Positions 8,704 through 16,915 of a stretch of 64,000 bases of DNA are shown piece after piece. The stretch is from Haliotis cracherodii (Eukaryota): NCBI RefSeq assembly GCF_022045235.1, contig NW_027266341.1:17050001-17114000 (forward strand), in the 5' to 3' direction. Under the pieces are notes generated by a model that was given only the letters and a program-made list of their open reading frames with translations, was not told where the DNA came from and made no database searches. The stretch's first letter is position 1. Each line of letters opens with the position of its first letter. Position numbers and translations under genes: made by a program.

Positions 8704-10509
8704 TCAGGTTTTAACGATCCTCAGATTCAAATCTGGACTCTGAGTAAGATGAGTGGACTGACACCGACGAAATATTCCGAACACCGTTCCCGTGATATTT
8801 CCCCAGTTGTCCATTACGTGTACAGCGCTCTGGGTGTCCGAGGCTACGCTGTCAGAGTCGGCGTTGCCACCTTCAACGTACATCGATCGGAACGTTGCAA
8901 AGGGGTTGGTCGTCGTGTCCCTGGCCATGTTGATGTTGGTGACACGTAGTTCTGTCCTCTCAACAAGAGGGAGGAGGGTCAAACTCGCCGTGCCACCGTC
9001 GGCATACACCACGTCAAGGGTGAGATATCTAGGGTTAATTGTTACTTTGGAAATTGGAGCACTTGGCCTCATTGTTTTGTCCGTTTGACCAATAAGCACT
9101 GAAGATCCGAAAGGTATCCATGAAGCTCCTGGTGGTGTCATTGGAAGTAAACGAACATTTCCATCTTGATAGAGAACCATTATCTGGCACCAGCCATTAT
9201 TTGACCATGGGACCGGGACATAGAATCGTATATAATGGGCAGTCCATGACTGAGAAGTCGTTGACAAAGTCACCTCCATCGTTGTATTTTGCTGCCACCA
9301 GAAATCCACATGCAGACCTTCGATAATAATGTCTTCTTTATAGATTTCAAACATTCTATCGCCTTCAAAGGCCCGTCTTTGGATGTAAAAATGGTTTATA
9401 GTAATAGTTTCTGGGTGGCTTGTTACGATTACCAAGATGACGTGATTTGCATTTGCACCCAAGATATAATCAGGAACTTGCCATTCAAAGGTATGAGATG
9501 CGTTTGTAAACTGGTACGTTTGTAAAGTTGTGTATCTGTTAAACTTTCCCCGGCAGAGAACTGTGACCGTAGCAACATCCATGATGCCACTTAAAGACAA
9601 GGAGATAACTCCACCCATCTCAGAATTAAACACTCCCTCTTTTGGTGTGTTAAGATAGAATAAAAGACCAAGATGAATTGTTGCAATACCGTGGCTGTTA
9701 ACTTGTGAGCCCAACACACTAAGAGTGTTCGGGTCAGTGAGGTTGAGAATGGACTTGAGGTTCACATTGGTATAGTTCCAGAACACTGCTTCAGCAAAGG
9801 AGCAATTTTCAAAATCTTGATAAATTTCATTTCTGAAGGAATGGTACATTGGTAAGGTTGCACTGATGGTGTATTCACTGACAGATTCATGAAACACGGG
9901 GATATGAACGTTATCCTCCTCAGCGCATGCTGTTGGATAACTTTTCTGAGTGATATAACCTTCTGATACTGACTCTCGCTGAGGGTTTTTAAGCACAGGA
10001 GTATCCTGAGAACATGGCAGTCTACAATGCAGAATGTCCGTATTGAGATGATCATCCGCTATTTCTATCACAATTTTATCAATTTCGAGGCCCCAACGAT
10101 CAGTTTCATTGGCATATATGCTCAATCGATGCATCCCACCTGTAACTATCGTACTTCCGAGTTCACCAGAATGATAAAATATGTTCCAGGATTGGCCGCC
10201 AGTGTCATGTCTTCGTGTCCGGAAAGAGCCAATGGCCAAGTTGTCCATGCCGACACTGACGTTGTCAGAGTGACCATCGTTGGAAAAGACAACATCTTTG
10301 ACAGTTAGGTTTGTCGTCTGTATGAAACAGATCGAGAATATGATAGAGCTCCCCTGGTAGAGGAGGACAGACTGATACCCAGATGCTTTTGATCTGTAGT
10401 TTCTGATATGTTGACCTTTCGAGTCCTCGGCCTCTAGCGTCCAAAGCGCCGCTGACGTGAACTCCGTCCACACCATCAAAATTAAAACGACGACCTGACT
10501 ACAGTTCAT
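8704..10509 (-). CDS. Secreted uncharacterised protein, 601 aa: signal peptide, CBM6/CBM35-like N-terminal module, conserved unnamed C-terminal domain; single-exon CDS (paralog 1)
   Basis: Uninterrupted 1.8-kb ORF. Hydrophobic leader (MNCSQVVVLILMVWTEFTSA). LEAED...ASG...SNDG...WN...HRLSI...EIDKIVI pattern typical of CBM6/35 jelly-rolls. Many NxS/T sequons. Colinear with the 599-aa paralog, with many synonymous differences. Minus-strand AATAAA at 8172-8177. Confidence 0.9.
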   Translation of the reverse strand: MNCSQVVVLILMVWTEFTSAALWTLEAEDSKGQHIRNYRSKASGYQSVLLYQGSSIIFSICFIQTTNLTVKDVVFSNDGHSDNVSVGMDNLAIGSFRTRRHDTGGQSWNIFYHSGELGSTIVTGGMHRLSIYANETDRWGLEIDKIVIEIADDHLNTDILHCRLPCSQDTPVLKNPQRESVSEGYITQKSYPTACAEEDNVHIPVFHESVSEYTISATLPMYHSFRNEIYQDFENCSFAEAVFWNYTNVNLKSILNLTDPNTLSVLGSQVNSHGIATIHLGLLFYLNTPKEGVFNSEMGGVISLSLSGIMDVATVTVLCRGKFNRYTTLQTYQFTNASHTFEWQVPDYILGANANHVILVIVTSHPETITINHFYIQRRAFEGDRMFEIYKEDIIIEGLHVDFWWQQNTTMEVTLSTTSQSWTAHYIRFYVPVPWSNNGWCQIMVLYQDGNVRLLPMTPPGASWIPFGSSVLIGQTDKTMRPSAPISKVTINPRYLTLDVVYADGGTASLTLLPLVERTELRVTNINMARDTTTNPFATFRSMYVEGGNADSDSVASDTQSAVHVMDNWGNITGTVFGIFRRCQSTHLTQSPDLNLRIVKT

Positions 10510-10513
10510 CTTT

Positions 10514-14089: not shown

Positions 14090-15115
14090 ATTTGGAAACC
14101 CAACAGTTACTCAGTCAGCTGGTTTAACGCCATGTTGAGCATACAAAATCTAGCACATCACGAGAGAAATATCCAAAGAGATGCAAGAAAGAAGTTTCCC
14201 ACCTTGGTGAAAACCATTGGAAGAAGTTTCTGTGGTGCTGCAGCAAATGCTGACTATATTTACTTGTATGTTTGTTGTTTAACCCGCAGTCGACAATATT
14301 CCAGCCATATCACCCAGAATAGATAGCAGGAGGTCTTGCATTACGTTGTACAGGGTTTCTACTTTGACGTCATAGTTTCATAAGGCCATGATTCATAAAC
14401 ACATGCTCATGATGTAGTCGGAATCGTACAATCTACTCTGCTTTATGTGGCAATTTCTATTGGATGTGGAAAGGGTTTTGTCGCTTTATTTATTTGGAAG
14501 CTTGTCTTCAGTTGAACATTTTCTACTCCCATCTATATTGTATTGCGACGGCAGAGCTATTTGGTAATTTCAGCTCCAATAGACATTTTCCCAACATTTC
14601 GTTACTATGATAGATACCCAGGAACACAACCAACGTCATTTGGGCACAAATAATGGGCTTCGCACATCGTAACAGTTTGAGGATTCGGACCCTGATCCTC
14701 AGCGTAACGAGCCAACCATTAAGTTATACCTTCGTCCATTCGAGTGGTAAAAAATAATATCTACAAAACCCAACACAATACCTATATTTACTTTAACCTC
14801 TACTGTCAGTTTTCAAAACATGTACAAATATGTAATTCTTCCAGCTGCGTATAATTGTGCTGCTCCCAAAAACGATTTGATATTGACGTGCGGCTACAAA
14901 GAGTGTTTTCCTAATAGAATACCCACATCAACAACAGGGAACAATAGGGCCACATGACTTTTATTATGAAAAATATTTGAAAAAAGATACACAGAGGACA
15001 GGTAGAATGTTTTGTTCTTTAAAGTCAGGGTAACATCCAGAGTTGAATGTGTGTATATTTCCCTGAAAAAGGATTCAAATCACATATGCAGTAGCAAATT
15101 CCATGAAATTGGAAC

Positions 15116-16915
15116 TTATCCCTGCATGATACCCAAGTAAAGATCGGGGCTTTGTGTAAGATGTCGGGAGTGACAGCGACGCAGGAAGCCGAACAACGAT
15201 CCGCTGATGGTGCCCCATCTGTCCATGATGTGTTCAGGACTCTGTGTGTTGGAGGCTACGGTGTCACAGTCGGCGTTGGCGCCTTCTATATACATCGACC
15301 GGAATGTGGCAAAGGGGTAGGCTGTTGTATTCCGAGTCATGTTGATGTTGGAGAGACGTAGTTCTGTCCTTTCGACGAGGGGGAGGAGGGTCATGGTTGC
15401 CGTTCCGCCGTCAGCGTACACCACGTCAAAGGTCAACGCTGCCGGGTCAATCTTCAGCTTGGTGATTGGTGCACTTGGACGAGCCTCTATATTACTTTGT
15501 CCAACAACGATAGAGGAACCAAATGGGATCCAATCGGTGCCATCAGGAGTGGTAGGAAGGAGTCTTACATTCCCATCTTCGTACAGAACCATTACTTGGC
15601 ACCAGCCACCGGACCATGGGATTGGGACATATACCTGGATATAGTGTGTTGTCCAAGTGGTCGTAGACGTGGTCAGTGACACATCCATTGTCTCGTTCGT
15701 CCTCCACCAAAGGTCTTTCGTTACTCCATTAACCACGACATCCCCCTTGTAAATGGTGAAAAATGTGTCTCCCTTCGTTTCCCGTGTCTGCAGATAGAAC
15801 TCGTCGATGTTCACGACATCACTCTGGTTTGATACTAAAAACAGGAGAAGATCGTTAGAGGTTTGTGTCCAAGTGAAATCAGGAATGGGCCAGACATATG
15901 ACGGATTGTTGGTTGAAAATCTGAACGTATTCAATTGAGTGTACCCAGTGGCGCTTCCCCCTTTATACAGAAGGGTGACACTTGCGGCACCGCCTATTCC
16001 ACTTAGAGTTAGGTGGATGTTACCTCCGATCTGAGGGTCTGCCAGATTGACGACTGAAAATGCTGTTCCAATCTGGAGTGTCTTTGTCCCGTCGGGGTTG
16101 ACAGATTTAGCTTTCAGGTCTAGAGTAGCCTGGACTGATTGCTGTGCGGTTCTTGACAGAGACGCTACGTCAATGTTGGTGAAGTTCCAGTAGACGTCAC
16201 TTGCAAAACTGCAATTGTCAAAATTGGGGGCTCTTTCATTTTTGAATGAGTGGTATGCGGGAAGTTTGGCTGTGACTACATACTCGCTGACTGAATTATG
16301 GAACACAGGGATAACGACATTGTCTTCTTCGGCACAGGCGGTCGGGTAGCTTTGCTGTGAGATGTAGCCCTCAGGGACAGAACCCGCCGGAGGACCTGTT
16401 AGAGGCGACACGTCCTGGGAACAGGGATATTTGCAGAGATAGATATCAGAGTTGAGATGCTCGTCGTCGATCTCCATAACAACCCTGTCTATTTCCACTC
16501 CCCAGAAGTCAGCCGTCTCGGCCCGCAGCACCAGTCTGTGAATCCCGCTGCCTGCCATGATGCTACCTAGAGTACCCGTGTAACGGAACACATTCCACAG
16601 ACGACCAAAGTCTGTTCCTGAAGCCGTGTTGAACTCGCCAATGACTATATTGTCAAACGTGACGACGACTCGGTCAGGTCCCCCGTCATTGGAGAACACG
16701 ATATCTCGGAAGGTAACATTCGTCTCTTTCATCAGGCAGATTTGGAAGATGAGACTTTCTCCCTGACTAATATGCGCCACTTCTTGTTGAGAGGCAGCCA
16801 ATCGTCGGTTGACCTGGTGACTACCCCGGGTGAGTTCCCCCTCAAAGGTCCACTGTAGAGCTGATGCCTTGCTCAGCACCAACACCATTGTAACCAGAAC
16901 CACCACTGCTTTCAT
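15116..16915 (-). CDS. Secreted uncharacterised protein, 599 aa, same architecture as paralog 1; single-exon CDS (paralog 2)
   Basis: Uninterrupted ORF with signal peptide MKAVVVLVTMVLVLSKASA. Shares blocks SYPTACAEEDNV, WCQxMVLYxDGNVRLLP, WIPFGSS, TLLPLVERTELR, PFATFRSMY and HLTQSPDL with paralog 1. Minus-strand AATAAA at 14960-14965. Confidence 0.9.
   Translation of the reverse strand: MKAVVVLVTMVLVLSKASALQWTFEGELTRGSHQVNRRLAASQQEVAHISQGESLIFQICLMKETNVTFRDIVFSNDGGPDRVVVTFDNIVIGEFNTASGTDFGRLWNVFRYTGTLGSIMAGSGIHRLVLRAETADFWGVEIDRVVMEIDDEHLNSDIYLCKYPCSQDVSPLTGPPAGSVPEGYISQQSYPTACAEEDNVVIPVFHNSVSEYVVTAKLPAYHSFKNERAPNFDNCSFASDVYWNFTNIDVASLSRTAQQSVQATLDLKAKSVNPDGTKTLQIGTAFSVVNLADPQIGGNIHLTLSGIGGAASVTLLYKGGSATGYTQLNTFRFSTNNPSYVWPIPDFTWTQTSNDLLLFLVSNQSDVVNIDEFYLQTRETKGDTFFTIYKGDVVVNGVTKDLWWRTNETMDVSLTTSTTTWTTHYIQVYVPIPWSGGWCQVMVLYEDGNVRLLPTTPDGTDWIPFGSSIVVGQSNIEARPSAPITKLKIDPAALTFDVVYADGGTATMTLLPLVERTELRLSNINMTRNTTAYPFATFRSMYIEGANADCDTVASNTQSPEHIMDRWGTISGSLFGFLRRCHSRHLTQSPDLYLGIMQG

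Follow-up and report, generated by a model that had tools for sequence, protein, structure and literature searches.

The window analysed here is a 64,000-nucleotide stretch of the genome of the abalone Haliotis cracherodii (genome G000, C78:17050001-17114000), and our subject is a pair of genes on its minus strand, A and B, that encode related proteins of about 600 residues. Both are uninterrupted open reading frames (ORFs) lying exactly where the original prediction, made from the sequence alone, had placed them. The coding sequence of gene A occupies positions 8704-10509 (601 amino acids plus stop) and that of gene B positions 15116-16915 (599 amino acids plus stop), the latter a single uninterrupted exon in the ORF list and in transcript-like contigs. 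In BLASTP the two proteins share 301 identities (51%) and 408 positives over 586 positions, and all five of the long blocks that had been picked out as common to them (SYPTACAEEDNV, DGNVRLLP, WIPFGSS, PFATFRSMY and HLTQSPDL) are found in both. Gene A aligns with gene B along the whole of the family alignment and retains every core motif. The closest database match of gene B is a Haliotis rufescens protein, 98% identical and 'uncharacterized' at NCBI.

The architecture of the gene B protein was obtained from an AlphaFold2 model built from a 24-row family alignment (mean predicted local distance difference test score, pLDDT, 85.9), with domain boundaries drawn from a family hidden Markov model (HMM) set against 150 distant matches and from an alignment, A2, of 25 short bacterial homologues with the two window proteins. 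A signal peptide (residues 1-19) is followed by an N-terminal module, D1 (residues 20-150), and by a core split into a motif segment (183-239) and a C-terminal domain, D3 (383-599), between which lies a further domain, D2 (~240-382). The signal peptide, MKAVVVLVTMVLVLSKASA, is encoded at 16859-16915 and has recognisable n-, h- and c-regions, from which its probable cleavage site was taken; in the model a helix spans residues 2-16 and the first β-strand starts at residue 20. On the same strand follow D1 at 16466-16858, modelled as a β-sandwich, the motif segment at 16199-16369, which reads S.YPT.CAEEDNV.IP ... P.Y ... NC, the all-β D2 at 15770-16198 and D3, the predicted supersandwich, at 15119-15769. 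Gene A has the same four-part architecture, with D1 at ~10057-10449, the motif segment at ~9790-9960, D2 at ~9358-9789 and D3 at 8707-9357. A hydrophobic, signal-peptide-like N-terminus is present in both proteins, as had been claimed, and both are probably secreted on this sequence evidence. The many N-glycosylation sequons that had also been remarked on number 10 in A and seven in B, which is not above the expectation from composition-shuffled sequences (p 0.11 and 0.32, respectively).

Comparison with bacterial relatives makes sense of the split core. In most of the short bacterial homologues (~300-450 residues) the motif segment is joined directly to D3, and D2 is absent from all 25 short bacterial rows of A2 while present in both window rows. 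A minimal bacterial homologue of 313 residues, P0101, models as one compact domain (pLDDT 90.1, predicted template modelling score 0.85), of which the motif segment, with a pLDDT of 86-97, forms part. The 'T.CAE.DN' segment therefore belongs to the C-terminal core, and residues ~240-382 are an insertion. D2 is also found in a separate bacterial clade, in which HMM positions 180-609 are matched continuously. In the gene B model its strands span residues 241-377; the structure match lists were dominated by D1. A Foldseek search with the full-length model was not usable, since besides two single-module matches to carbohydrate-binding modules (CBMs) it returned multi-sandwich matches with root-mean-square deviations (rmsd) of ~16-32 Å.

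The original prediction saw a module like CBM6 and CBM35 at the N-terminus, and this has held up structurally. D1 is modelled with a pLDDT of 86-94 over residues 21-150 and, over residues 18-154 of the model, VIA-align matched it to a CBM35 (3zm8_A, Z 15.6, 122 residues aligned, rmsd 2.4), a CBM36 (7ay3_A, Z 15.2), a CBM6 (8j3x_A, Z 15.1) and 2cdo_A (Z 14.8). At least 20 solved CBM6/35/36 modules resemble it at Z 14-15.6, with an rmsd of 2.0-2.7 Å over 113-123 residues. By sequence, Pfam CBM_6 matches six of 24 family members (best E 4.2e-06); the modules of the two window proteins differ in falling below Pfam detection, with no CBM_6 or CBM_35 match at E<=1. D1 nevertheless shares with CBM6/35/36 a β-jelly-roll fold, an N-terminal E.E (LEAED in gene A, FEGEL in gene B), a G.H strand and an invariant Asp in the last strand; this residue, D143, and G124 (gene B numbering) are kept in 24 of 24 family members. 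In CBM6-type modules a structural calcium site is formed by the N-terminal E.E and the Asp of the last strand, and the E.E of both proteins together with D143 are candidate calcium-site residues at the sequence level. An ASG motif that had been counted among the hallmarks of the module occupies the CBM6-typical place in gene A, but gene B has AASQQ there. By predicted fold, then, D1 is a CBM6/35/36-type β-sandwich. Whereas eukaryotic family members carry it at the N-terminus, in bacterial proteins with the insert it follows the core.

The match list of D1 also contains Cry toxin chains, at Z 10.5-13.2, and a foraminiferal relative, P0120, has a MACPF domain after its core, so that a pore-forming or toxin-like defence protein, with D1 resembling Cry toxin domain III, has to be considered. 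Cry domain III, however, is a sandwich of the CBM6 type in its own right, so that the match extends only to the CBM fold; true CBMs score higher, and Pfam scans of the abalone proteins revealed neither MACPF nor any other pore-forming module. We regard a toxin-like role as very improbable.

The C-terminal domain had been described as strongly conserved and unnamed. Unnamed it is by sequence, with no match for the core in Pfam, NCBIfam or the PDB (phmmer and a profile of A2) and none in a feature-based search of the ESM Atlas, but a predicted fold can now be assigned to it. D3 (residues 379-599 of the gene B model) matched Escherichia coli OpgG (1txk_B) first among 48,161 chains, at Z 15.8 with an rmsd of 2.6 Å over 209 aligned residues, and Xanthomonas OpgD (8x18_B) at Z 15.2. 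Apart from three multi-domain matches with an rmsd of 18-22 Å, OpgG and OpgD were the sole non-CBM entries in the top 50 for the gene B model. With the minimal core P0101, only two of 48,161 chains reached Z>=8, OpgG at Z 15.5 with 213 residues aligned and OpgD at Z 15.1; a PL26 lyase came third at Z 7.2, and galactose-mutarotase-like sandwiches of a generic kind ranked below it. Foldseek independently also put OpgG first (E 5.6e-4, probability 1.00), with 1txk and 8ip2 as top matches. A weak lead in the same direction comes from the ESM Atlas, whose own poor model has a cluster of MdoG as its nearest structure (TM-score 0.38/0.41). The unnamed core is thus modelled as an OpgG/OpgD (GH186)-like supersandwich. 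Galactose-mutarotase-like supersandwiches (aldose 1-epimerases, the C-terminal domains of GH38 and GH2, PL26 and PL4 lyases) belong to the same general class and occupy ranks 3-50 for the minimal core, but since they reach only Z 4.2-7.2, against about 15 for OpgG and OpgD, the resemblance to the latter is specific and goes beyond fold class.

Residue conservation in the core was measured in a set of 194 sequences, from which five were dropped as less than 70% filled and 21 as more than 95% identical to others, leaving 168 non-redundant rows (68 animal-type, three foraminiferal and 97 bacterial). D447, R451, R479, R539, S540, D549, R579, S583, H585 and D591 are each kept in 152-164 of these. 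The motif-segment columns are filled in only 86 of the 168 rows, an hmmalign artefact affecting insert-free proteins, and for this reason conservation of the segment was taken from A2 and a further alignment, A3. All 27 rows of A2 carry its T, C, A, E, D, N, P, Y and C unchanged, and among 73 non-mollusc relatives conservation of the residues of T.CAE.DN, P.Y and the C is 90% or more. The acidic and His residues that had been flagged as candidate sites (EEDN, DGN, NADxD and SxH) thus prove, along with several Arg, to be conserved from bacteria to molluscs.

No Pfam family covers the core in the 73 non-mollusc relatives, but Pfam domains fused to it are informative: CBM_6 in six proteins, Dockerin_1 in five, Cohesin and CBM_35_2 in two each, and, once each, SLH, PA14, BACON_2, a type IX secretion system (T9SS) sorting tail, a GH114-associated domain and MACPF. 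These partners are the usual company of extracellular glycan-degrading or carbohydrate-active enzymes.

A secreted, modular, all-β protein with eight or nine cysteines, from a family that has expanded in molluscs, might also be a structural component of shell matrix, egg coat, mucus or adhesive, its sandwiches serving as scaffolds for no specific glycan chemistry. Such a role makes little sense for a core that occurs as a ~300-residue stand-alone secreted protein in many bacterial phyla; moreover, conservation is concentrated on polar residues and not in the hydrophobic core alone, and neither abalone protein contains low-complexity or repeat regions. We consider this explanation improbable.

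Relatives of the two proteins are widely but unevenly distributed. A word-based search found 25, of which the 16 named are all molluscan proteins labelled uncharacterized or hypothetical, and cluster look-ups add Lottia, Patella, Mytilus, Mizuhopecten and Octopus, bringing the family to at least 13 named mollusc genera among gastropods, bivalves and cephalopods. One cluster contains a record from an octocoral (Paramuricea clavata). An exhaustive search produced 691 proteins at E<=1e-3, 150 of which were listed. Foraminifera of the genera Bolivina and Nonionella have CBM and core without the D2 insert. The foraminiferal relatives include P0087, P0088 and P0120, and in P0120, from Bolivina argentea, the core is followed by a PT-repeat linker and the MACPF pore-forming domain mentioned above; it is unusual to find a perforin-like domain joined to a module directed at glycans. 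A scan of 185,579 prokaryotic species genomes yielded 37 loci, all in uncultured bacteria represented by metagenome-assembled genomes (MAGs), from Planctomycetota, Chloroflexota, Acidobacteriota, Verrucomicrobiota, Lentisphaerae, Nitrospiraceae, Bacteroidia, Deltaproteobacteria, Bipolaricaulota and others; the insert-bearing form comes from Verrucomicrobiota and Lentisphaerae. The eukaryotic distribution is patchy and marine. With named eukaryotic matches confined to molluscs, one octocoral record and foraminifera, and with prokaryotic relatives in existence, this is not an already characterised pan-metazoan family.

In a FastTree phylogeny of the 168 rows the proteins of animal-type architecture form one side (71 rows, support 94), made up of several deep lineages. 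Since gastropods and bivalves are mixed in each of these, the family must have diversified before the gastropod-bivalve-cephalopod split. An IQ-TREE analysis of the D3 columns of 70 of the 168 rows, hand-chosen for balance, separates the eukaryotes (26 animal-type and three foraminiferal rows) from 41 bacterial rows with support 99/93, and recovers an animal-type clade (96/95) and an insert-bearing bacterial clade (99/95). In an approximately unbiased (AU) test, joining the animal family with the insert-bearing bacteria was not rejected (log-likelihood difference 10.2, p 0.24). The original prediction envisaged horizontal acquisition followed by duplication. Horizontal transfer between bacteria and eukaryotes is possible; but because the tree splits all eukaryotes from all bacteria, with no nesting, neither donor nor direction is shown. 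Some animal carbohydrate-active enzymes, for example mollusc and arthropod cellulases, are suspected to be of bacterial origin. The present family is like these in that its coding sequence has no introns, its modules are of bacterial type, its eukaryotic distribution is patchy and it has expanded in particular lineages, but differs in that its tree does not nest animals within bacteria and its split predates the divergence of gastropods, bivalves and cephalopods.

Transcription was followed for gene B, with contigs from four runs mapped on positions 14300-20200. Its coding sequence is covered end to end by transcript-like contigs in three of the four runs and by overlapping pieces in the fourth. 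In three runs (X12, X5 and X6) contigs stop at exactly 16921 on the 5' side of the gene, and one contig of run X12 (record 9, 2,074 nucleotides) maps to 14949-16921 and then to 17567-17661. It thereby skips a 645-nucleotide intron in the 5' untranslated region (UTR), at 16923-17567 on the minus strand, with a donor AAAG/GTATGT and an acceptor TTTTAG/G, one G being assignable to either side. The first 5'-UTR exon extends at least over 17568-17661, and its true start may lie a few bases upstream; about 30 nucleotides upstream of the contig's 5' end is a TATA-like box, TATATAAGG (17686-17694, minus strand), a putative promoter element. The 3' UTR covers at least 14949-15115, the contigs ending at 14949 (X12), 14958 (X6) and 14807 (X5), with which a poly(A) signal AATAAA at 14960-14965 on the same strand is consistent. 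A polypyrimidine tract and AG precede the ATG of both genes, by four nucleotides in gene A and seven in gene B. By analogy with gene B, a 3' splice acceptor is predicted for gene A at 10514-10515 (TTTTATTTTTCAG/AAAGATG, minus strand), four nucleotides before its ATG.

Because the contigs skip 645 nucleotides bounded by GT and AG, gene B is a eukaryotic gene that is transcribed and spliced, with its whole coding sequence in one exon and an intron in the 5' UTR. The earlier description of single-exon genes therefore stands for the coding part, but the 5' UTR of gene B is split; the absence of transcripts had been named as an outcome that would speak against the prediction, and for gene B they are found. 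The same evidence disposes of an artefact, whether bacterial contamination of the assembly or chance ORFs, to which the intronless coding sequence and the bacterial relatives might point. The genes lie on a chromosome-scale contig amid retroelements, gene B has its spliced intron, TATA-like box and poly(A) signal, relatives occur across the mollusc genera in a eukaryotic clade separate from bacteria, and the sequences are under purifying selection. We consider this explanation refuted.

The proportion of synonymous differences (pS) between genes A and B is 0.79, which is saturated, against a proportion of nonsynonymous differences (pN) of 0.32; in the C-terminal domain pN is 0.22 and pS 0.71. 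Of the coding differences between the window and the gene B transcript contigs, 36 were listed, 25 of them synonymous and 11 nonsynonymous, with 67 more beyond those. Purifying selection, as had been suggested, accords with both comparisons. The UTRs and flanks of the two genes are unalignable, and no similarity was found between them. Genes A and B are ancient tandem paralogs, whose duplication is old and whose coding sequences have been kept by selection.

A search of the abalone's own genome with gene B gave 23 matches, comprising eight full-length uninterrupted copies, five partial core matches and ten matches to the N-terminal module only. The eight intact paralogs are ORFs of 599-629 residues, three of them in this cluster; the third (L003, C78:17048254-17050053, 610 residues, 41% identical to B) is also an intact ORF, and its last 53 nucleotides form positions 1-53 of the window, on the plus strand. 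L003 and L004 (C67:55737588-55739387) are the youngest pair, with 95% amino acid identity and a ratio of nonsynonymous to synonymous substitution rates (dN/dS) of 0.24; lying on different contigs, they represent a recent inter-chromosomal duplication or an uncollapsed haplotype. A fourth local copy is found in pieces ~7-10 kb before the window (C78:17039893-17042982; L009 and L011, among the five partial core matches), with residues 40-133 and 134-510 in different frames and 513-596 ~1.4 kb further on, and is likely to be a pseudogene or a copy with an insertion. The ten loci with a D1-like module and no core lie on C2, C12, C23, C45 and C67, and in D1-only proteins (P0069, P0076, P0081, P0083, P0114, P0161, P0166 and P0170) the module is often present in two to four tandem copies. 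The CBM6-like module has thus undergone a second, separate expansion in the same genome.

The repeat-rich setting described for the genes is documented only in part. A 267-residue ORF between them (11161-11964, minus strand) matches zf-RVT weakly (E 6.1e-05, 24 bits, the Pfam cut-off being 27.5) and is probably the tail of a degraded retroelement lacking long terminal repeats (non-LTR). An element at ~18284-18500 has a very high copy number, with a summed contig depth of 1e5-4e5 in all four runs and hundreds of contigs that end or join there; neither an Rfam family nor a tRNA-like structure was found for it, and it is probably an expressed interspersed repeat, like a short interspersed nuclear element (SINE) or of another kind. 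Positions 1503-1645 of the window are a run of 143 N, either an assembly gap or a masked stretch.

What might such proteins do? We lean, with modest assurance, towards secreted modular carbohydrate-active proteins in which the CBM would target a polysaccharide and the OpgG-like core would cleave or remodel the glycan. The signal peptide would export the protein from the cell, the N-terminal CBM6/35/36-type sandwich would dock it onto a polysaccharide, and the conserved core, composed of the 'T.CAE.DN' segment and the C-terminal ~215 residues with their predicted OpgG/OpgD fold, would hold a glycan chain in its cleft before acting on it. Predicted cleft residues in gene B are E196, D198, N199, Y221, D447, R451, R479, R539, S540, D549, R579, S583, H585 and D591, and the inserted β-sandwich (~240-382) probably extends the binding surface. 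The substrate may be algal or microbial β-glucans or other marine polysaccharides, which is a guess. This carbohydrate-active role is favoured because D1 has a CBM fold and the core an OpgG-like one in the models, because charged and polar residues are conserved across kingdoms, because fusions of the core are of the kind seen in carbohydrate-active enzymes, and because eight intact ~600-residue paralogs persist despite saturated synonymous divergence, with gene B expressed and spliced.

GH186 offers the nearest point of comparison. This family was recognised only in 2023; OpgG and OpgD are its founding members, acting as β-1,2-glucanases or transglycosylases (PMC10514313). In E. coli OpgD the general acid is D388, and D300, as relay base, and its partner R359 take part in a relay of water and substrate (PMC10514313). 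The acid corresponds to D361 of E. coli OpgG and D379 of Xanthomonas OpgD, and the relay pair to D273 and R332 of E. coli OpgG. The ~215-residue core resembles the supersandwich of the catalytic N-terminal domain of GH186 (Z 15.1-15.8, 206-213 residues aligned), each family has invariant Asp and Arg residues in this domain, and both are exported, acting (GH186) or proposed to act (the abalone family) on glycans outside the cytoplasm. The relay Asp and Arg of GH186 are inside the aligned range, and the near-invariant D549 and R579 of the core follow in the same chain order, a correspondence of order only and not of aligned residues.

The differences are equally clear. The abalone-family core is shorter, aligned to OpgG 48-343 only, and lacks Loop A. 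OpgG reportedly has a C-terminal Ig-like domain, whereas in the abalone proteins and the minimal bacterial ones nothing follows the core. The core also has the extra N-terminal 'T.CAE.DN' segment and, in animals, the ~140-residue inserted sandwich and the CBM. Finally, the family occurs in animals, foraminifera and non-proteobacterial MAGs and differs from GH186 in lying outside the opgGH operons of proteobacteria; the 20 ORFs beside 10 bacterial homologue loci include no opgH-like neighbour.

Several observations weigh against the carbohydrate-active interpretation. The structural alignments end at residue 343 of E. coli OpgG and 361 of Xanthomonas OpgD, in each case 18 residues before the general acid, which therefore has no sequential counterpart in the core. 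Pfam MdoG (PF04349) was absent from the window proteins at E<=1 and from the whole genome, the E. coli control being detected. In hhalign the core profile reached a probability of 0.1% both with E. coli OpgG alone and with a 16-row OpgG/OpgD alignment, which is shallow, 14 of the 16 rows being at least 69% identical to E. coli OpgG; both times the same short stretch was aligned, PFATFRSM with APLTSMF, which is a lead only. Among the 68 animal-type paralogs R539 is kept in 54 and D549 in 55, which fits the presence of non-catalytic members. The 20 ORFs at the 10 bacterial loci provide no carbohydrate context or recurring partner, only a single β-helix/pectate-lyase-like protein. Lastly, the RNA label of the four runs is a tool's guess, although the small contig totals fit transcriptomes and the spliced contig supports it. 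The fold is common to the two families but sequence similarity is absent and the acid has no sequential counterpart, and for these reasons we do not file the family under GH186. The invariant E196 and D198 of the motif segment might occupy the place of the general acid in space, as a permutation.

The lack of a sequential counterpart to the acid speaks for a different reading, in which the proteins are non-catalytic secreted lectins or pattern-recognition proteins whose CBM and core only bind glycans, such as microbial β-glucans, and serve in immunity, in organising mucus or in sorting particles. An analogy is provided by the glucan-recognition proteins of invertebrates, which are based on inactive folds of the glycosidase type, and eight intact paralogs with ten further CBM-only loci look like the expansion typical of invertebrate recognition families. 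Some paralogs also lack individual conserved residues. E. coli OpgG itself hydrolyses very little although its substrate-binding site is complete (PMC10514313). A Patella caerulea member (P0180) is even named 'Galectin' in UniRef, but this label is probably an automatic mislabel, since Pfam finds no galectin domain in any of the 24 relatives scanned. Against a purely binding function, about 14 charged or polar core residues are near invariant from bacteria to molluscs, a pattern seen more often with catalysis than with binding only; the bacterial relatives bear enzyme-typical dockerin, cohesin and CBM appendages; and, with a CBM already present, the need for a second, larger binding domain is not obvious. 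We think a lectin-like role possible but doubtful, and continue to prefer the carbohydrate-active one. A bolder form of the latter, which we put forward tentatively and think rather unlikely, is a new glycoside hydrolase or transglycosylase family, a very distant and possibly circularly permuted relative of GH186 with the CAE.DN strand supplying the catalytic acid, that an early marine eukaryote or stem mollusc would have acquired from bacteria and that would then have expanded to at least eight copies in abalone to digest, or defend against, algal or microbial glucans.

The proposal of an undescribed secreted glycan-binding or glycan-processing family is thus borne out by the predicted folds of CBM and core and by the lack of a name for the latter, catalysis being a further step of interpretation. 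No description of the family was found in the literature searched, outside which lay supplementary tables and ~1.7 million PMC articles. On the models, this is a new core family in a CBM-bearing extracellular glycan-active protein, whose sole recognisable relative, by fold, is GH186. For annotation, hundreds of 'uncharacterized' or 'hypothetical' proteins gain an architecture of signal peptide, CBM6-like module, split OpgG-like core and inserted sandwich, and expression and crystallisation of the ~300-residue bacterial minimal version should pose little difficulty. Should the core prove catalytic, it would be a new carbohydrate-active enzyme family with no representative in Pfam, NCBIfam or solved structures. 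The family occurs in molluscs of commercial importance (abalone, oysters, scallops and mussels), in cephalopods and foraminifera and in numerous uncultured bacteria; if the interpretation is true, it would mean that animals contribute an unexpected activity of their own to the turnover of marine polysaccharides or to glycan recognition between hosts and microbes.

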